Positions 34,691 to 44,921 of a stretch of 64,000 bases of DNA are shown here, piece after piece. How positions within the stretch are numbered: the stretch's first letter is position 1; every line of letters starts with the position of its first letter. The position numbers and the translations under genes are program-made. The notes under the pieces were generated by a model. The model searched no databases. It saw only the letters and a program-made list of their open reading frames with translations, and was not told where the DNA came from. Source of the stretch: Perkinsela sp. CCAP 1560/9. Taxonomy: Eukaryota > Protista > Euglenozoa: Kinetoplastea. The DNA lies in the NCBI GenBank assembly GCA_965644495.1, contig CBFFSA010000008.1, forward strand, positions 186,001 through 250,000, written 5' to 3'.

Positions 34691-36265
34691 TTAGCACTCG
34701 AAAAGAGGAGAATCTAGAGCAGCCATTCCACTGGTTACCCCACCTCCGGAAGTTTGGGCAAACTTGGTGCGTATGAGATATCCACTTGACTCATTTGTTA
34801 GTACATTGCCTGTTTCGTGACTCAAATATATTCCGTAAATTCCAATTTCCGGAACCAGTAGCCCTGACTGCACACCATTTTTAGGGTGTAAAATATGCCC
34901 CACCTTTGTTACTGAGTCTATCTTCCTTGTTAGAAGGTAGGGAAGTCCCTTGCCACCGCGCATAGCTTGCTTCCAGCCCTGCAGTAATTTTGTCATTGCA
35001 TCTCCTGTAAAAATTTGTCCACTACCTTCGCGGTAAGACTTCAAAACGTAAGTCGTAGGAAAGTGTAACGCATCTTCCACTCCCTCTATTTCTTTTTCCC
35101 CTACTTGAAGAAGATCATATTGAGGCAACATGTATGAAGTGAGTTCTTCAATTTCGTCCTTTGACCAGTCTCCATATCTGAGGAGAAGTTCACGAGAGCA
35201 CAGTGCTTCTTGTACTTTTTTGAGAGTACAAAGATGGTGCGGTAGGGAAGGACATTTGATACAACTAGCACGCTCCACAATCTCACGGGCGTGCCAACAA
35301 TCCTCCGTGGGATAATCATTTTTGTCATAGCCGCAACGATAATATGCGACGGATACAGGAAGACCATCTGGCGTGCACAATTCTGGCATGGCGCAAAGGG
35401 AATTAACACGTTCTTTTCCAGTTGCGATGTCTCGATTGTGACGTAAAACGAATGACGTCGCCACCTCCGAAAGCGTGGCATAAACCGTTTGTAAACCGTA
35501 TTGCTGTGACAGTACTTCAGAAAGAGGAAAAATGTCTGCTAAGTTACGCTCATCAGCCTTACGAATAACGAGTAGAACGCTTAGCTTCGAGTTCACACGT
35601 GTTGCGTTCTCACGGCGCCATAGGTGAGTTGCCTCGACAAGAGCTTGGCAAACTTTACTTTGCGCATCGCACATAGCGACTGCGGGGTTAAGTACATTTC
35701 CCTCAGCATTGTTTTTATATTTCGAATGCGTAAAACGATGAAGCGCATTTACTTTTCCTGCCAGACAAATAAAGGCGCTTGCTATTGTGTTGAACTCCAC
35801 CTGTCGTAGCTTGTTGGTTGTCCTTTCAAGCATATAGTCATAGCGATTCACACATAACATCCATTTCTGGTAGGGCACCACTGTGGCGTGGGGGGTATTG
35901 GACGCAGAGTTTGAGCCAAATTTATCAAACTGAGTATCAGTTGGAGCATATACGGAGATGGTAATTGAAAGAAGTCTCTCTACAAAAGGATCTACTGTGC
36001 TCACGTGATATAACGTGTTGAGAAGGAAAGGTAAATCACGAGCTATGCGATCTAAAACGATATTATACTTTTCCGTAACGCGCACTGCCCCTTGAAGCGG
36101 AATACGAGGTAAACTCATAGGCTGCAAAGTAATCGGTACGTGCAAGCCCGTGAGTGAGCCTCTGAAGACATTTTCGCTAGGAAGATCAAAGCTCAAAATG
36201 CCGTGTGTCATTGCATAGAGTGACGCATCATGTGCACAGCTGGCGATCTTTCTTTTAAGATCCAT
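34691..36265 (-). CDS. GSS: Glutathione synthetase (eukaryotic type)
   Basis: RYDYM, QVEFNTIASAF, YYRCGY, IKCPS, VLKSYREG, EIGIYG, GYLIRTK, GGVTSGMAALDS. Confidence 0.93.
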   Translation of the reverse strand: MDLKRKIASCAHDASLYAMTHGILSFDLPSENVFRGSLTGLHVPITLQPMSLPRIPLQGAVRVTEKYNIVLDRIARDLPFLLNTLYHVSTVDPFVERLLSITISVYAPTDTQFDKFGSNSASNTPHATVVPYQKWMLCVNRYDYMLERTTNKLRQVEFNTIASAFICLAGKVNALHRFTHSKYKNNAEGNVLNPAVAMCDAQSKVCQALVEATHLWRRENATRVNSKLSVLLVIRKADERNLADIFPLSEVLSQQYGLQTVYATLSEVATSFVLRHNRDIATGKERVNSLCAMPELCTPDGLPVSVAYYRCGYDKNDYPTEDCWHAREIVERASCIKCPSLPHHLCTLKKVQEALCSRELLLRYGDWSKDEIEELTSYMLPQYDLLQVGEKEIEGVEDALHFPTTYVLKSYREGSGQIFTGDAMTKLLQGWKQAMRGGKGLPYLLTRKIDSVTKVGHILHPKNGVQSGLLVPEIGIYGIYLSHETGNVLTNESSGYLIRTKFAQTSGGGVTSGMAALDSPLFEC

Positions 36266-36586: not shown

Positions 36587-36667
36587 ATAGAATTTCGCCC
36601 GACAAAATATTTTCAGAAAAAAGTTTTTTTTTTCGCAAAGAATCAAAGGCAACACCATAAACTGAGA

Positions 36668-36783
36668 GTGTTGCCAATCCCTGGTCAGTAATCGGCCCAG
36701 GGACATAGCAACTCCCCATTATCTCGGGCGTAGTAAACACGCCTTGGCTTGCCTGGCACTGAGATCAGCCATTGGAAAAAAAA
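36668..36783. repeat. Inverted terminal repeat (3' end of element)
   Basis: Exact reverse complement of 42258-42373. Confidence 0.95.
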
Positions 36784-37338
36784 CGCATTTTTTTCGTTAG
36801 AGGCCTCCTTTCTCAGCCCAGGGGCTTCCCACTTAAGGGGCCCGTTCCCACAACCAAGTGATCTCCCCGGCAACACGATTTCATTCGTGCGTCAAGAAGG
36901 CTGGGCTATGGGACCAGGGAGCTCTAGAACAAGTGCAGCAACTTGTGAGCCTAATTCGACATGAAATGATAGTGGGATTAAATTAGTTCATAGTAAAACT
37001 AAATTATACATTGCATGTACTGAAAACATAAAAAAGGAAAAATAACACGCGCATAGCTTATTATGCGATCTTAAAAGATTTTGTGTTTCAAAATATTTAC
37101 ATGGTCATAAACAAAAACCCAGTAAAAGCAAATTACCTGTAAATTTTAGATTCTCCATTTTCTTATTTTGTCGAATCATTCGACTCGAATGCTGACGGGG
37201 TTCCTACTCTCACTCTGTGCGTGGACCTTTGACGAGTTGGCTACGGATTTTCCGTAACTGGAGCAATAGAGATGAAAATACTGGTTCATTTTTTTAGTGT
37301 AGTCCATTCGCCTTCGCAGCTTCGTTTACTTGTCAATC

Positions 37339-39094
37339 TCAGATTATGATTGGGTCCATATGTGAGAGAGCGATTTCGATTCCTCCGGGCAACAGACCGT
37401 CTTTGACTCGGAATCCGAACTCTTCCCGCGTTAGGCCGTCTGCTGGATTCTCCTTAGATTTGAGATAAAAGATGCGAAACGATAGCCCAGTCTTTCTCCT
37501 TTCTTCGATGTCTAGGAGCTGCTGACAAATTGAATGTCGAACTGATGTGCGCTTTTGGAGTGCCCGCACAACGTCCATATTATCGCATCCTAGAATCACA
37601 TGGGGAGCAAGTTTCCACCCTGTGATTAAGGCGGCTTTTGCCGCAGAGAACTCAGCATCGTATATCTCCCGATACAAGTATTGGAATACTTTCTTGCAGC
37701 AAAATTTCTCCCGATTGACGGAGTACGCATAAACCAGTGTGGGTCGAAGATGCGTCCGAAAAAGCAAGAACGAGATGGGATATTGGAATTGGCGGTAATG
37801 CGCAACTTCTCTTGTTACTCAATATACGCACTACATGCATGCTCAAGAGCTTTAAGTCTTCGCTCTTCAATTTGTAAAAGCTTTCTTCGGATTGGTGCGA
37901 TATCTCTTTCGCGATCATTCGAACATCATAGACTGAAGCAAAGGAGGATTGGGTGACCATTGTATCCCACATGATCACACCTATCACCCTCTTTATGTCT
38001 CGCACGGTCGTAGGTGACACGGTTTCTAGTACTCTCCAACGAGCAATGTTAGATTCAGCGTGTTTCCAAAATAATTTGTCTATTTCCCAAGAGAACTCTA
38101 TTCCTAAAAATAGGGCTTGATCACATGGGCCGTCGATATATTTCCATTCGACGTTGCAACCCGTTGGCAGTCTCTTCATGCTTTTCATGAGTTGCGATCT
38201 TAACTGACTTAAAAAACCTTCGTTGCTAGATATGACCAACACATTGTCAATCCAAACAAATACTGCACCTTGTTTTGCTTTTGTCTTCTTATTTATCGCC
38301 CACGCGAATGCCGGAGGTGATTCAGATGTGTCTCGGACAGGTAACATCTCATGACCTGTAGGACAAGCCGCTAAAACAATTATCCATGCCAGACATTGGG
38401 CAAGATAAGGAGCCCAAGAGAACCCCATTGGGAGAACTCGCAACTCGAAAGTCTTGTCCTCGCATTTTATTGAGAATATGCGACCCAAGCCTGATGGGAT
38501 TCGTATTTGATGAAAGAAATGACGAATGTCCGCAATCAAGAATTTTCCACCTGGAAAGCATGATAAGATGTGTGTGACTTCTGCGAGAGCTGGAAAGTTT
38601 AGGCTAGGGGGAGTAGCGCATCTATCGTTTATAGGGGTGCCATCTACGATGCTCCGAGATGAAATTTCATCTTTTGGCACTTCAAAGTATCGGAAATAAA
38701 GGCGAGAATCATTACGAAAATCCTGAACTCTGCGCAGTACTTCATACGAACAAAGCTCAGCTAAGTGATCACGCCATTTTGCTTCAGAATGTACCCCAAG
38801 TTTCCCACGAAAGCCTTCGAATTCCGTGAAAAGACGAAATGAGTGTTCATCAGTGAGTATGGTAAGGCACTTTTTTCCCCACGTGTACGTGCTTCGAGAT
38901 GCAATAGCGCATAGAGTATCGATATGAAGACGACCTGCAACCGAAATGGGATCAAGGGCCCGTTGCTTTAGCGTACAGGACTTTTGGAGGACTGCACCAT
39001 ATGCCGTTCCATATGCTAGGTTGTCCGCGGGTTCGTTCACTAATACTATATTATATCCCAACGTCAAAAGACGAATAAACCTACGTTTATTCAT
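37339..39094 (-). CDS. Reverse transcriptase-RNase H (one frameshift at ~37660)
   Basis: FEVPK..RSIVD, ADIRHFFHQI, LPMGFSWAP, VWIDNV and FLG; RNase H residues AFSDAS (frame 1), then IYDAEF, GCDN and ENPADGLTR (frame 2). Confidence 0.9.
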
Positions 39095-39438
39095 TAGTAA
39101 TCAAATGGCGGAATGCATAGCTGTGCGCCACATAAGAAATAATCGTTGTACAAGACAAACTTGTACAAGACACGTATGATATCACGTAGAGATTTAGCAC
39201 ATTATTGGAGGAAGGTCTCATAGTTGTAACACTCGATTTGTAACGACTCTCTTTTTTATAGCTTCCAACTTCTTTCACTTAACGTTTCGACTTGAAAACC
39301 AAACTTTTAGTATCTTTAATTTAGTGAAACAAGTCTCCAAGGAACTAGTTTACATGGAACTAACTATATTATGAACTGATTACGCAGAACTAAGGTAGGA
39401 GAAAATCACGCGAGTGGCTTTTTGTTTCTTTCCGTTCT

Positions 39439-40320
39439 CTAATCATGCACTTGAGAATGCGGTGCTAAGTAGTGCTTCTGTCTCACCTGTCTCGACATGC
39501 CCGACAGTGCACTGGACATCATGTCAGCGACGTTTTCTACTATGGCCCCAGTACCACCATGTCTCAGAGTGTGAGTTCCATCAAAAGTCACTCCAGATGG
39601 CCATCCCAGTTCGGTGGATGCTCTTTTTACAAGTTTACTCGTGGATCTTTTCTTGTACGCCGGAAACGCAAGGTCTCCATGTGTTACGTCACGCAGGGCA
39701 TTTCGCACTTCTTCGGTTGCAACATGAGTAAGAGGTTTGCACCTTTGCTTATCAGTTGAGTAACTCTTTGTTTTATCGTGGCGGATGAGAAGATGAGACC
39801 AAGAGCCTTCTACACGCAAATCCCCGCCACGTATCTTCTCCACTTCACAGGATCGAAGAGCAGCGTAGTATTGCACGCGAAAAGCTCTTGCGAGCTGCGG
39901 CCCGTTAGCACGGGGTGTGACCCACCGTACAAGTTCGTGTAACATATTTTCTGATACATAGCCTCTGGGACATTTTTCTTGTCTATGCTGCTCTGCCTCA
40001 ACGGCAGCCCCGTCCACTGCCCGAAGTATGAGGCGGTCGCCTGCCCAGGGGCGTTCACCTGCTTCGAGGTCAAAGCTTTGACATTCCTGATAGAAGAGCA
40101 AGGCACTGCGGTAACCTTGAAAAGTCGATTTGGCGCATCCAACCGATGCGTGATGCCACAAAAAACATCCGAACGCTTCTTTCGTTATTTTTTCGAATCC
40201 TCGGTTCTTGCAAAACTTTCGTAAAGCAGCAAATCGGGCCTCGTACATCCTTCGCGTTCCGGGTGCAATCGACTTTAATGCCAGAGCTGCCAGATACCCT
40301 TCGCAAGAATCTTTCTGCAT
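39439..40320 (-). CDS. Tyrosine recombinase
   Basis: SAM-like N-domain (SIAPGTRRMY..STFQGYRSAL), then catalytic residues R (AALRSCE), K (DKTK), HTLRHGG and Y (KHY). Confidence 0.92.
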   Translation of the reverse strand: MQKDSCEGYLAALALKSIAPGTRRMYEARFAALRKFCKNRGFEKITKEAFGCFLWHHASVGCAKSTFQGYRSALLFYQECQSFDLEAGERPWAGDRLILRAVDGAAVEAEQHRQEKCPRGYVSENMLHELVRWVTPRANGPQLARAFRVQYYAALRSCEVEKIRGGDLRVEGSWSHLLIRHDKTKSYSTDKQRCKPLTHVATEEVRNALRDVTHGDLAFPAYKKRSTSKLVKRASTELGWPSGVTFDGTHTLRHGGTGAIVENVADMMSSALSGMSRQVRQKHYLAPHSQVHD

Positions 40321-40915
40321 CTAAAAGTATGCAAAAATACTCAATGTGTGTGATTACATGGTTTATTTACATATACCGTATGCAATCTCATATCTTCAAC
40401 GGAATGGCCAGTTTAATATATTTAACTTTCCATGTGTAAAATAGCGGATGAAATAACAGACTGCTTTGTTGTAGACACACTTATTCATTCAGTTCATTAT
40501 GTCTTATGGTTTCCCCGATTTTCAAGGAGAAACTGCACCATATTATGACTTACTTTTAATCTGGATGCCACCCATTTGACCCTTTTTGGTATTCCAACAA
40601 ATTGTGCTTAATGATTAGGCACCTACGTACTAGATACACTGTATGTTAATCTGATAGGAATAATTATCACACTTTCCCTCACTATACATGTATTACTTAA
40701 CGTCTAAGTAATGTGCAAAGCCCATTTTCTTTACACAATGTCTATGCTGTATAAAGGCGTCTGTTGTGTGTGAGTGTCACTCGTTGTATGACAAATACGC
40801 ACAATCCTAATGATCTGCACAAGCAAATAATAATATTCGTGCTCTATGTTCAGCCCAAACATGAATCTGATTAAGAAAAACTAAAACATACATCTATTGC
40901 CCCCAAGATCGGCAA

Positions 40916-41959
40916 TTACGGCCCCTTTTCATGTTTATTCTTTCGATCGTTCATTTCCCGAGAAATCTTTTCTGGCCGTTCTTGGCCTTTGACGAAACCT
41001 TCTCGATTAGAACGATAAGATCGAGGGGCATACAAATTTACTGGTCGCGGGCGGTTGAAATAACGCACATCCGGCCCAAATGTTCTTCTGTTGTTTTGGA
41101 CCATGCCTCCCCGTCCATAGCCTGAAGTACTATTTTGGAAGGATTTCGCCTTCAAAAGAGTCTCCGGTATAGTTACGGAGTCGGTCTCTGGGAGCAATCC
41201 GACGTTCTTGCGGCAAAGAAGAAGAGATTCCTCTTTCTTTACGTCGTCAAAATCGGCGCTGAACACAAGAAAATGAGCAGCGAGTTCTAGAAGGAAATGG
41301 TTAGCTGCTATTGATACCGCCTTGTTTTCTTGTGCCGCCTTGGGGGATACACCTTTTCCTGCTTGCGTAAGCATCTCCTTGAAGAAAATAGCGTAGCGGG
41401 TTAGAAGAAAGCTTTCGGCCCATTTTTGAAACTTCGGGTTGTGCACTGCCTCCCACAGTTGCTCTCCAAGGTGAGGACGATTCTCCGTGCCTGTCCATAC
41501 GGTAAGTTGCCCGTCCTCCTTTTCTCCTTCCCGTGCTTTCATTTTCTTTGGCTCCTTCGGGGGGTCCAGCATGAGGGAAACCAAAATTCCTCGATGTTCT
41601 TCGTTTCCAATCAAATTCTCGAATCCGGAGACGTCCTGTGTTCGGCGGACACCCAAAAGTTTGGCTGTAAAACTTGCTTTTTCACTGAGGGTTTCTCCCC
41701 TTAATACCTTTTCAACGAAATCCATGATTGCACTTGCGCATTCGTCTTCGCTGATTTCCGCCATAAATTTGACAAGGAGATTCACATCGACTGCGCGCTC
41801 AAAACGTAGAGAAATTTTTATGCTCGTTTTCGTCGAGCATGCCTGGTCGACTACGCTATCGACGTTTGCGTCAAAGTGGTGAGTGTGGCCGACTATAGGA
41901 ACTGAGCGGCTTTGTGAAGCTTGGGGTGAGGTAGCTACGGAGGGTCGTTTCTTCGGCAT
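40916..41959 (-). CDS. Putative gag-like ORF1 of the YR retroelement
   Basis: First ORF inside the ITR; helical, with an R/G/N-rich basic C-terminus; no CCHC knuckle; assigned by position. Confidence 0.65.
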   Translation of the reverse strand: MPKKRPSVATSPQASQSRSVPIVGHTHHFDANVDSVVDQACSTKTSIKISLRFERAVDVNLLVKFMAEISEDECASAIMDFVEKVLRGETLSEKASFTAKLLGVRRTQDVSGFENLIGNEEHRGILVSLMLDPPKEPKKMKAREGEKEDGQLTVWTGTENRPHLGEQLWEAVHNPKFQKWAESFLLTRYAIFFKEMLTQAGKGVSPKAAQENKAVSIAANHFLLELAAHFLVFSADFDDVKKEESLLLCRKNVGLLPETDSVTIPETLLKAKSFQNSTSGYGRGGMVQNNRRTFGPDVRYFNRPRPVNLYAPRSYRSNREGFVKGQERPEKISREMNDRKNKHEKGP

Positions 41960-42257
41960 AAGAAATAAAATTTAGAGCAAGTTCCTACGCATGTTTTAAT
42001 AGATTAGATACGGTTGTGACTTATCCTGGTCATCTTTGCTCTCTCATTCTATATTCACCCTTTCTGTATTTCCACCCTCACGCTCGCCAGAATATGGATA
42101 CTTGCTGACTGCTTTATGTCAGCATATTCCTGTTTCTCTCTGTTTTCTCTCTCGCTCTTTTTCCTTACTACTTCAAGCAATCGGCGAAACTAATGTATTC
42201 ATCTATACATACGCCTTCTGTATTTTTTTTTCTGCTTTCTATTCTTTCGTCTTTCTT

Positions 42258-42373
42258 TTTTTTTTCCAATGGCTGATCTCAGTGCCAGGCAAGCCAAGGC
42301 GTGTTTACTACGCCCGAGATAATGGGGAGTTGCTATGTCCCTGGGCCGATTACTGACCAGGGATTGGCAACAC
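42258..42373. repeat. Inverted terminal repeat (5' end of element)
   Basis: Exact reverse complement of 36668-36783. Confidence 0.95.
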
Positions 42374-42375
42374 CC

Positions 42376-43918
42376 TCATTATCACAGGCTTCATAAGCAC
42401 CTTGATACCGGGACCAAGCCCAGTGACAGGCATGCCCATTGGCACCGCAGATCAGTTCCCTCCTCCCCTTCTTGTCATCATTCTAGGTTTTCAAACGTGA
42501 GACAAAACTCTAAGGGGCGTGGAATCTGTTGAGCATCTTTTATTAGATACTTCACACAGATGCGTAGCCGTAAAGGCATTGCATTCGAAATCCGTGGAAT
42601 AATGAACGCAGTGCAAAACTGACCCGACTGCGCAAGTCGTATAAGGTGCGTCACACTGACGAATCCATTTTGTTTTTCTTTCTATCCATTTTTTTTTCTT
42701 TACTTCCAGTACCCTGGAAAGCAACACAGACAGCAGTGGTACTGTGTGATGATCAGCAATATTTGCTTACAATAATCATTAAATTTACGACTACGAGAAG
42801 CCAATCCTCAATGATCACTCGAAGTGAAGTGCCAACCGTCAGTCCCGAAGGACTTCGAGGCAAAGTATAACCACCAACCGTCAGTTCCGAAGAACCCCGA
42901 GGTGAAGTGCCAACCGTCAGTCCCGAAGGACCTCGAGGCAAAGTATAACCACCAACCGTCAATTCCGAAGAACCTCGAGGTGAAGTGCCAACCGTCAGTC
43001 CCGAAGGACCTCGAGGCGAAGTATAACCACCAACCGTCAATTCCGAAGAACCTCGAGGTGAAGTGCCAACCGTCAGTCCCGAAGGACCTCGAGGCAAAGT
43101 ATAACCACCAACGGTCAGTTCCGAAGAACCTCGAGGTGAAGTGCCAACCGTCAGTCCCGAAGGACCTCGAGGCAAAGTAAAACCACCAACCGTCAGTTCC
43201 GAAGAACCTCGAGGTGAAGTGCCAACCGTCAGTCCCGAAGGACCTCGAGGCAAAGTAAAACCACCAACCGTCAGTTCCGAAGAACCTCGAGGTGAAGTGC
43301 CAACCGTCAGTGCCGAAGGACCTCGAGGCAAAGTAAAACCACCAACCGTCAGTTCCGAAGAACCTCGAGGTGAAGTGCCAACCGTCAGTCCCGAAGGACC
43401 TCGAGGCAAAGTGTAACCACCAACCGTCAGTTCCGAAGAACCTCAAGGTGAAGTGCCAACCGTCAGTCCCGAAAGACCTCGAGGCAAATAATAAATTGTT
43501 ATTATAATAATAATAATCGTCGACCGTGAGTCACAAATTTCCTCGAAGTAGTTCATTTTGGCGCCGAACGGTATGTTTTCCCCGGTCAGGGCCAAAACGA
43601 ACCGGAATAAAATCACTAATTTAGTGCCAGGCTCGGTTCCACATAGCATGTCAACATGTAAATAAAATTTATATCCTATCTTTGGGTCGGAACCAAGGAT
43701 TATAGTGTGTATATTCAACAAACCTGTATGTTCAAACAAATCAGTATGTTCAACAAACCTGTATGTTTAACAAACGAAGAGATGGACAAATATATTAAAA
43801 AAAAAAGTCGTACCTTATCGTACAATAAAACTCTTCACCCTCACACTTCGTCTTGTTAAGAAGACGACGCCGGGCTTGGGACCGGTATCAAGCGTGTTTA
43901 TGAAGCCTGTGATAATGA
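42376..43918. mobile_element. Non-autonomous TIR element carrying a 78-bp tandem array
   Basis: tcattatcacaggcttcataagcaccttgataccgggaccaagccc (42376-42421) is an imperfect inverted copy of 43872-43918. Confidence 0.7.
42818..43488. repeat. 78-bp dimeric (42+36 bp) tandem repeat, ~8.5 copies
   Basis: ccaaccgtcagtcccgaaggacctcgaggcaaagtaWaacca + ccaaccgtcagttccgaagaacctcgaggtgaagtg. Confidence 0.95.
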
Positions 43919-44177
43919 TAGTTTTAAGAAAAAAAACGCACCTTTTGGACCACTCGAGGCACCCCTTCTTCGAAAGCAATTTGAAAACTCGAATTTCCCA
44001 CATACATGCTTTTTTCAACTGGAAGCGTGTGATACGCAAGACCGTAGAGGAAGGAGGAGGCGAAAGGTAAGAAGCAGAAGGCAGAGCCGGTTAATGACGG
44101 GTTATACTGCGCCCAATTATTTTTATTTTGCACAAAGTTGTACGCGAAGAAGTTTATATTATAAACTATTTTATATA

Positions 44178-44921
44178 CACCCATGGACAGAAGTGTGCCC
44201 CCGGCCTGGCAAATGTGAATTTTTTTTACCCGTTTTTTCTCATTTTTGCAGCATTCGAGAGATCTCGTTCCCCTAGCGAAGAGCTTTGCCGCCTTTGCTT
44301 CATAGGGACCCCCTGGTACCCCCTGTTTCCAAAAAACATGGTTTTATTGCCCGTTTTTTGGAACACAGTCAATTTCTCTAGTATATTATCTTTTTTTCTA
44401 CCTGTTTTTTCTTCATGAGGACCCTGCCTCGTATAAATCATAACGAAACATCGTTTTGTCGATTTCGGAGCGAACAGAGATAGTCAAACAGCATAAATCC
44501 ACACAACTTTGTAGTTTTAAGCCACACAACTATGTAACCCTGACAAAGGCCACAGGAAAGGCGTTTAATGCTCTAAAACGTGCCCCACATAGATAGAAGG
44601 TGTTGAATTCCATCAAATCTGTTCCTAAACGTATGCAAATAGTTATTCAGACCAATGGGGAGCATTGCGGATATTGATACTTCTTCCTTTTTTCTCATTT
44701 TCTCATTGAAAGGGTGATTTTTTTTCTAGATGTCTAATGCACCATTTTTTGTTTTTGGTCTACTTCGGGGTCACCACCAGAGCACCAGGGGGTCCCTATG
44801 AAAAAAAGGCGGCAAAGCTCTTCGCTAGGGGAACGAGATCGCTCGAATGCTGCAAAAATGAGAAAAAACGGATAAAAAAATGGCATTTGCCAGACCGGGG
44901 GCACACTTCTGTCCATGGGTG
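44178..44921 (+). mobile_element. Tc1-like deletion derivative with ~140-bp TIRs and TA flanks
   Basis: ta-cacccatggacagaagtgtgcccccgg at the left end, mirrored at the right end; internal KVLNSIKSVPKRMQIVIQTNGEHCGY* resembles a Tc1 C-terminus. Confidence 0.85.

Follow-up and report, generated by a model that had tools for sequence, protein, structure and literature searches.

What kind of mobile element joins the gene order of kinetoplastid tyrosine recombinase (YR) retrotransposons to a pair of long inverted repeats, and what would those repeats do? The question is raised by a 64,000-nucleotide stretch of Perkinsela sp. CCAP 1560/9 (contig CBFFSA010000008.1, positions 186,001 to 250,000; C8:186001-250000 of the 21 Mb, 110-contig genome that we examined), here called the window. 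A first-pass annotation of the window had placed an element at 36648-42374, with a gag-like gene, a YR, a reverse transcriptase (RT) and RNase H (RH), and had described it as bounded by perfect 116-bp inverted terminal repeats (ITRs) in the style of DIRS elements. The minus-strand open reading frames (ORFs) on which this rested, gag-like, YR, RT and an RNase-H-like frame, all exist, and their positions and domain matches give the gag-YR-RT/RH order of a YR retrotransposon; with RT/RNase H and a tyrosine recombinase in place of a DDE integrase, it belongs within the order DIRS. The limits of the element and the nature of its repeats proved to be different, and the annotation had missed three features: a twister ribozyme motif, the true 5′ end and a spliced-leader target. 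We put the probability at about 0.6 that the element unites VIPER-type gene order, the logic of a DIRS-1-type internal complementary region (ICR) and a ribozyme-defined 5′ end in the full cycle proposed below.

Two further copies of this family (family A) are present in the genome, on contigs C1 and C9, both 98–99% identical to the window copy. Homology among the three copies spans 36656-43917, with nothing outside it, and the flanks part ways at 43917/43918 and 36664/36665, so that the element does not end at 42374; its true right end lies 1.5 kb further on. The 3′ boundary is uncertain by 2 nt, because the ‘CA’ at 36663-36664 also forms the first two bases of the element. The 5′ junction is bridged by contigs in two samples (four DNA runs, whose contigs are too short to reveal empty sites), and other copies abut spliced-leader (SL) sequence. 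Read in the sense direction, the element consists of a 5′ end with a twister-P1 motif, tandem arrays, the ICR, the gag-like ORF, the YR ORF, RT-RH and a 3′ segment of 119 nt (Table 1).

Table 1. Features of the retrotransposon and its flanks (positions are those of the window).
Feature	Position	Strand	Description
Whole element	36665..43917	minus	7,253 bp; defined by the ends of C1/C9 homology and by SL halves abutting the ends in five other copies
5′ flank	43918..43927	minus	TTAAAACTAT; with the 3′ flank makes an SL-like target
5′ terminal segment ‘a’ (nt 1–46)	43872..43917	minus	Starts CATTATCAC; an inverted copy sits in the ICR
Twister-P1-type self-cleaving ribozyme motif	43834..43904	minus	RF03160; predicted cut between 43900 (U18) and 43899 (A19)
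78-nt tandem array	42818..43488	minus	8.6 units, in the 5′ untranslated part; unit of two UUCG-loop hairpin half-units
ICR	42258..42421	minus	Sense strand is the reverse complement of 5′ nt 46–1, then that of the 3′ 119 nt; junction 42376/42377
gag-like ORF	40916..41959	minus	347 aa; basic C-terminus; no CCHC zinc knuckle; no Pfam match
YR ORF	39439..40320	minus	293 aa
RT-RNase H gene	37339..39094	minus	Split: RT 37652-39094 (480 aa) and RNase-H-like frame 37339-37767 (142 aa)
3′ terminal segment ‘b’ (119 nt)	36665..36783	minus	Block of ~45 nt conserved across subfamilies, and terminal hairpin; the former ‘left ITR’
3′ flank	36642..36664	minus	CAGTTTATGGTGTTGCC...; CAGTTT in common with nt 20–25 of the host SL

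When the element is compared with itself, only two repeats appear besides the tandem arrays, and both are inverted (a/a′ and b/b′). Element nt 1–46 pair with 1541–1497 at 91% identity, and the last 121 nt pair with 1540–1660. The second pair is the inverted repeat seen at the outset, which is real, with arms at 36663-36783 and 42258-42378 that are 99% complementary over 121 nt with one mismatch near one end, in line with the perfect 116 bp first described, but it is not terminal. The inner partners of the two pairs adjoin each other, so that the reverse complement of 42258-42421 runs from the 3′ end straight into the 5′ end, which is what defines a DIRS-type ICR (PMC7192593). What had been taken for the right terminal repeat is thus internal, lying 1.5 kb inside the 5′ end and upstream of gag; together with the next ~45 nt it makes up the very ICR that had been called unrecognizable. 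Neither split direct repeats nor any direct repeats apart from the tandem arrays were found in the self-comparison, and the termini at 43917 and 36665 are not inverted repeats of each other. Of the DIRS-style architecture, inverted-repeat logic as in DIRS-1 without split direct repeats was upheld, while the ITRs were not.

The same layout of 5′ end, ICR, body and 3′ end recurs in subfamilies B (L003, L004, L006, L009), C (L010–L014) and E (L061), as well as in the distant family L062 (22–29% protein identity), and the repeats are kept in every copy and subfamily examined. Terminal sequences differ by subfamily (5′ ends include CATTATCACAGGCTTCAT, CATTATCACAGACTTCAT, CATTATCACTCCTTCGT and CATTATCACAGCTCCAT), and the ICR tracks its own termini in each of A, B, C and E, which amounts to covariation. 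Short elements of 2.4–3.5 kb keep both termini, the ICR and fused RT fragments and, to judge by their make-up, are internally deleted, non-autonomous derivatives. A miniature inverted-repeat transposable element as independent source of the repeats, a possibility raised when they were first noticed, is ruled out by the conserved, covarying layout and by the short derivatives that retain termini and ICR. The distant family shows the layout in compact form (L062; G000:C2:1226000-1235999, minus strand): its 5′ 40 nt pair perfectly with an ICR 135 nt downstream, its ‘b’ extends over 114 nt at 99%, and the ends of the element overlap by 5 nt (AACTT).

The motif at the 5′ end matches the Rfam twister-P1 model (RF03160) over its full length, model positions 1–68, with 37.4 bits (local E value 7e-7, genome-wide E value 1.2e-5). 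It has every core nucleotide, lacks P3 and carries an inserted P5 stem. In the genome there are at least 27 RF03160 matches, as compared with none in 14 control genomes, and at least 23 distinct twister-headed 5′ ends begin with CATTATCAC, followed by the motif at a constant distance from the first base of the element. An alignment of 17 copies revealed compensatory changes in all six pairs of P5, while P2 and P4 are invariant and P1 varies in sequence by subfamily yet still pairs; pairing held in 88.9% of cells, against less than 48% when the partners were slid. Between the 5′ 40 nt and the ICR of L062 there is a divergent twister-like core (GGTCCAAATCCCGG), which obtained no Rfam score.

Twister structures cut at a U^A step, which here falls at 43900/43899, and cleavage is predicted to remove 18 nt of the element. 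ICR and 5′ end match exactly over nt 1–20 in subfamilies A, B, C and E, to 2 nt beyond the predicted cut, after which identity drops. Past the cut and two A residues the 5′ end continues AAACACGC...CCGGTCCCAAGCCCGG, the ICR AAGCACC...CCGGGACCAAGCCC. This difference is conserved across subfamilies, and the part of the ICR beyond nt 20 is itself conserved, in a non-twister form. The simplest reading of this pattern is that nucleotides upstream of the cut would be copied from the ICR in each cycle, while those downstream would be inherited from the RNA.

The outer ends of the element point to its target. The SL RNA gene of the host reads ...AACTTTAACGATAAAGATACAGTTTCTGTACCTTGTTG/GTATGAG (L021, L034), and the SL 12-mer CAGTTTCTGTAC occurs 533 times in the genome, as compared with 5 occurrences of a control; most are dispersed SL copies that head other repeats. 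Five of the six complete A and B copies (C1, C9, L003, L004 and L006) sit exactly at GATA^CAGTTTCTG in such copies (GATA^CAGTTT), between SL nt 19 and 20, with 9–14 nt of SL sequence to the left and 19 nt to the right. Further out, their flanks have nothing in common, and the insertions were therefore independent events. The left half of the SL is also visible at L009, L045 and L052, and uninterrupted SL copies are present elsewhere in the genome. The occupied sites are dispersed copies without the following SL intron. Across the six complete copies, the element start and the 3′ flank have only ‘CA’ in common; there is therefore no target-site duplication (TSD). The dispersed SL copies are mostly 5′-truncated and fused to other repeats, for instance to a family that continues GTACATTTTGCTAGCCC... 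(examples L018–L037), and their abundance suggests large-scale retroposition of trans-spliced RNAs.

In the window and C1 copies the gag-like ORF is open; it shares 25% identity (E 7e-32) with the first ORF of the C2 subfamily. The YR ORF has Phage_int_SAM_4 (E 4.7e-4) and Phage_integrase (E 8.4e-3) signals in the correct order; residues R156, K183, H250-x-x-R253 and H283-Y284 are invariant among relatives, and the ten best named Atlas clusters are all tyrosine recombinases (score 0.98). A profile search of PDB sequences with the YR gave chance matches only. The RT frame matches RVT_1 and the RNase-H-like frame RVT_3, both weakly, and the assignment to RT and RNase H is supported by an alignment of seven RT-RH sequences. 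Both the YR and the RT-RH signals expected from the first annotation are thus present, but the RT-RH frame of the window copy is broken, a point that the annotation had also missed: an (AT)n run at ~37666 differs in length by 2 nt, which splits what is a single 587-codon frame in the C1 and C9 copies. As had also been stated, there is no methyltransferase; the domain was found in none of the ORFs tested.

A large clade, with 935 representatives at E <1e-30, can be aligned with RT-RH, and the nearest Atlas clusters are from Euglenozoa. By word-index, exhaustive profile and cluster look-ups alike, the homologues found for RT-RH and YR are all unnamed proteins; one carries an RNase H of the hepadnavirus-type family PF00336, as has been reported for VIPER. 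The gag-like, YR, RT/RH order is also that of other subfamilies in the genome. Among relatives, one contig has the order of the window element and another has RT-RH before YR: on the latter (the JGI/NCBI metagenome contig of P0006) a 24–27% identical RT-RH precedes a Phage_integrase ORF, and both gene orders are therefore present in the RT clade. A 297-aa ORF in L038 was considered as a YR and rejected, as it gave no convincing alignment with YR.

From the anatomy observed we infer the following cycle of cleavage, end restoration and integration. Transcription reading through from host genes upstream of the element would yield the element RNA, and the twister would cut after nt 18, releasing that RNA from the host transcript with loss of its first 18 nt. 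The RNA would be reverse-transcribed by the RT-RH of the element. On the minus-strand complementary DNA (cDNA) the ICR would read as a junction of 3′ end and 5′ end, splint both cDNA ends and template the refill of the 18 lost nt, as proposed for the ICR of DIRS-1, to give a closed or terminally redundant intermediate. The YR would then recombine this junction (...CCCT^CATTATC...) with a chromosomal site of the type TA^CAGTT without TSD, the site for subfamilies A and B being nt 19/20 of dispersed SL copies. The early guess that templated correction keeps the repeats alike fits these data. So does the setting: all large ORFs (at least 200 aa) in 26920-59884 (33 kb) lie on the minus strand, which is the strand of the element, and the C1 and C9 copies are co-oriented with their flanking ORFs. 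This co-orientation fits a reliance on read-through transcription, under which a 5′ ribozyme would be useful.

Several observations weigh against this cycle. The twister score of 37.4 bits is below the Rfam gathering score of 67.2, and nothing in the window matches at the gathering threshold. The locus was recovered in DNA contig runs only and in no RNA run, and cleavage, transcript ends and cDNA forms are deductions. All Pfam matches of YR and RT are below cut-offs, and the AlphaFold model of the YR, built on a three-sequence alignment, is poor (predicted local distance difference test score 51). Motif C of the RT (window ~38230-38245, minus strand) is xDN instead of the usual xDD; as xDN recurs in 127 of the 128 members of the RT clade with a readable motif C (proteins P0001–P0159), it is probably compatible with activity. 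A literature search that included Ngaro found no published comment on xDN at motif C of an RT. The window copy itself sits in AAAACTAT^CAGTTTATGG, which is SL-like but not true SL sequence, and the sites of subfamilies C and E are looser (TA^CA). Co-orientation with host genes is known from three copies only. Finally, in none of the three family A copies are all three ORFs both intact and begun by ATG, and present-day activity is uncertain.

Four other explanations have to be weighed against the proposed cycle. The first accepts the anatomy and gives it another job: the a/a′ and b/b′ pairs might form an RNA panhandle that serves packaging, translation control or ribozyme regulation, or the junction might be a single-strand hairpin substrate of the recombinase, with the 5′ end restored otherwise or never lost. 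There is material for such a view. As stored in the ICR, the junction sequence in single-stranded DNA form makes a long hairpin with a stem that crosses the junction, and it does so in five subfamilies with differing sequences (z from −2.9 to −5.1); in several of them CATTATC pairs with GATAATG inside ‘b’. Within ‘b’, a block of ~45 nt (GCCAGGCAAGCCAAGGCGTGTTTACTACGCCGAGATAATGG) hardly varies between subfamilies, although their proteins are just 40–60% identical. Both the hairpin and the block look like cis-acting sites, and the conservation of the ICR beyond nt 20 in its non-twister form could be read in the same way. Nevertheless, another job leaves unexplained why in four subfamilies ICR identity ends 2 nt past the predicted cut, and a role in end restoration has experimental precedent in DIRS-1 (PMC7192593). 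We therefore consider it unlikely that such functions replace end restoration; the two roles are not mutually exclusive.

One way of combining them would be a single system of three devices, in which the twister sets the RNA 5′ end at a cost of 18 nt, the 5′-proximal inverted junction copy rebuilds these on the cDNA, and the rebuilt junction, folded as a single-strand hairpin with its stem across the crossover, is the substrate with which the recombinase enters a palindromic SL core (TACAG-TTT-CTGTA). This would resemble single-strand recombination at integron attC sites or by CTX phage. We offer so complete a scheme as a doubtful one, and the part given to the hairpin as recombinase substrate is speculation.

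Quite improbable, in our view, is the second explanation, in which the twister is a relic or inactive, the 5′ end is set by the transcription start, and the match of the ICR to nt 1–20 reflects origin only. In its favour are the sub-threshold score, the recovery of the locus in DNA runs only, and core mutations in L004, L014 and L045. These copies, however, belong to decayed, non-autonomous elements, while elsewhere the core nucleotides are invariant, P5 and P1 co-vary across many subfamilies, and the motif is always equally far from the first base of the element.

The third explanation, a composite in which a twister-headed non-autonomous element came to lie beside a YR element bounded by ITRs and segmental duplication then spread the two together, has some appeal in that short twister-headed elements are abundant in the genome and nested insertions occur, such as the 5-kb insert in the C9 copy. 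But the ICR directly joins complements of the outer 5′ end and of the 3′ end, in subfamily-specific form in A, B, C and E; the short elements share the three-part layout together with RT fragments and so are deletion derivatives; and outside the SL sequence each copy has its own, unrelated flanks. A composite origin is accordingly very hard to sustain. Least tenable of all is a 5.7-kb transposon (36648-42374) with true inverted terminal repeats and an unrelated 1.5 kb on its right: the arms are indeed 99% complementary and bracket all ORFs, but the extra 1.5 kb to 43917 is common to all three copies, the halves of the SL target abut 43917 and 36665 and not the inner arm, the inner arm continues as a copy of the true 5′ end, and no copy was seen to stop at that arm.

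The element can be compared with several known systems. In DIRS-1 the ICR is complementary to both extremities over 88 bp (33 + 55), is essential for retrotransposition, and serves to complete a sub-genomic transcript (PMC7192593). The window element resembles DIRS-1 as a YR retrotransposon with gag-like, RT/RH and YR genes, an ICR inverse to the joined termini, a short sequence common to both ends and the absence of a TSD. It differs in gene order (gag-RT/RH-YR in DIRS-1) and in having neither a methyltransferase nor long inverted terminal repeats; its ICR precedes gag, at 1.5 kb from the 5′ end, whereas that of DIRS-1 lies next to the right repeat, and the 5′ end of its RNA is apparently set by a ribozyme, whereas DIRS-1 has a promoter in its left long terminal repeat (LTR).

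VIPER and TATE carry split direct repeats, A1...B1-A2-B2 (PMC6681497, PMC12278014), and TATE is site-specific for telomeric repeats (PMC6681497). The window element shares with them the gag-like, YR, RT/RH order, the absence of a TSD, a host with a kinetoplastid-type SL, short non-autonomous derivatives (compare SIRE) and, with TATE, site specificity. In VIPER and TATE, though, the junction copy is direct and 3′-proximal, whereas here it is inverted and 5′-proximal and direct terminal repeats are lacking; no ribozyme or SL target has been reported for them. Lacking split direct repeats, the element falls outside the VIPER-like group, just as its gene order and want of ITRs place it outside the DIRS-1-like one.

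Self-cleaving ribozymes of the hepatitis delta virus (HDV) type are found in the non-LTR retrotransposons R2 and L1Tc. Twister variants have been described in non-LTR elements of Schistosoma mansoni (PMC8501958). As in those elements, a 5′ ribozyme is predicted to free the element RNA from a co-transcript; unlike them, with their target-primed reverse transcription, the window element is a YR element with a twister. HDV-like ribozymes, moreover, cut upstream of themselves so that no element sequence is lost, whereas the twister here is predicted to remove 18 nt that are kept as an internal spare copy. With SLACS, CZAR and CRE of trypanosomatids (PMC12278014) the element has in common a site-specific insertion inside SL exon sequence, but those are non-LTR elements that use a restriction-like endonuclease at nt 11/12 of real SL RNA genes, whereas the present type uses a YR at nt 19/20 of dispersed SL copies; target choice is the sole likeness. 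Our literature searches found no paper that combines a twister ribozyme with a tyrosine recombinase or YR element, no report of a YR or recombinase-based element that targets SL sequence, and no description of the gag-YR-RT/RH order together with inverted-repeat logic, in agreement with the earlier suggestion that the lineage or replication mode may be undescribed.

Among retroelements, YR retrotransposons are those whose replication is least understood; it took until 2020 for experiments to show what the DIRS-1 ICR does. That the ICR match ends at the predicted ribozyme cut in four subfamilies offers a testable reason for having an ICR, namely that it stores what the ribozyme removes. The element also links two published repeat logics, direct junction copies (VIPER, Ngaro, PAT) and inverted ones (DIRS-1), within a VIPER-type gene order, which bears on the classification of these groups. 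As target and junction are both short and well defined, the recombinase could lend itself to biochemical work.

The three family A copies are damaged in different ways. The window copy, its RT-RH frame broken, could move only with proteins from other copies; the C1 copy has GTG in place of the ATG that starts the YR in the window; and in the C9 copy the gag and YR frames are broken and a 5-kb SL-headed insert is present. This insert (L002:8436-10000 and L008:1-3419; 4,985 bp) lies in the YR-RT spacer and begins, on its own strand, with the 3′ part of the SL (GATACAGTTTCTGTACCTTGTTG); its head is common to L030, and it looks like an SL-headed retroposon.

An ENA contig (L017), considered as a relative in another organism, was set aside: with a repeat geometry identical to that of the C2 locus, it adds no independent evidence. 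The 5′ end predicted for it is absent within 3.4 kb upstream. At L060:1-3356 (equivalent to L017:2-1288) a 428-aa ORF with zf-RVT, a non-LTR-type RT tail, stands directly upstream of the C2-subfamily ICR. This copy either is 5′-truncated or has had its head replaced by another element.

Tandem arrays in the 5′ untranslated part differ by subfamily, with units of 78 nt in the window (copy number varies among element copies), 124 nt in L061 (L061:6941-8108) and ~65 nt in L062 (L062:8252-8978); the 124-nt array sits between twister and ICR, analogous to that of the window. Promoter or packaging site are guesses as to their function. Open frames across the 78-nt array (no longer than 240 codons, without ATG, and with one weak, meaningless DUF4305 match) were dismissed as coding. 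The host ORFs in 26920-59884 appear to be intron-less, glutathione synthase at 34691-36265 among them, and resemble a kinetoplastid-like polycistronic cluster. Just upstream of the element, at 44015-44340, summed contig depth is very high in each of the four DNA runs, and this region therefore represents another repeat family, and 45398-45684 matches sequence near the C9 copy at 76% identity.

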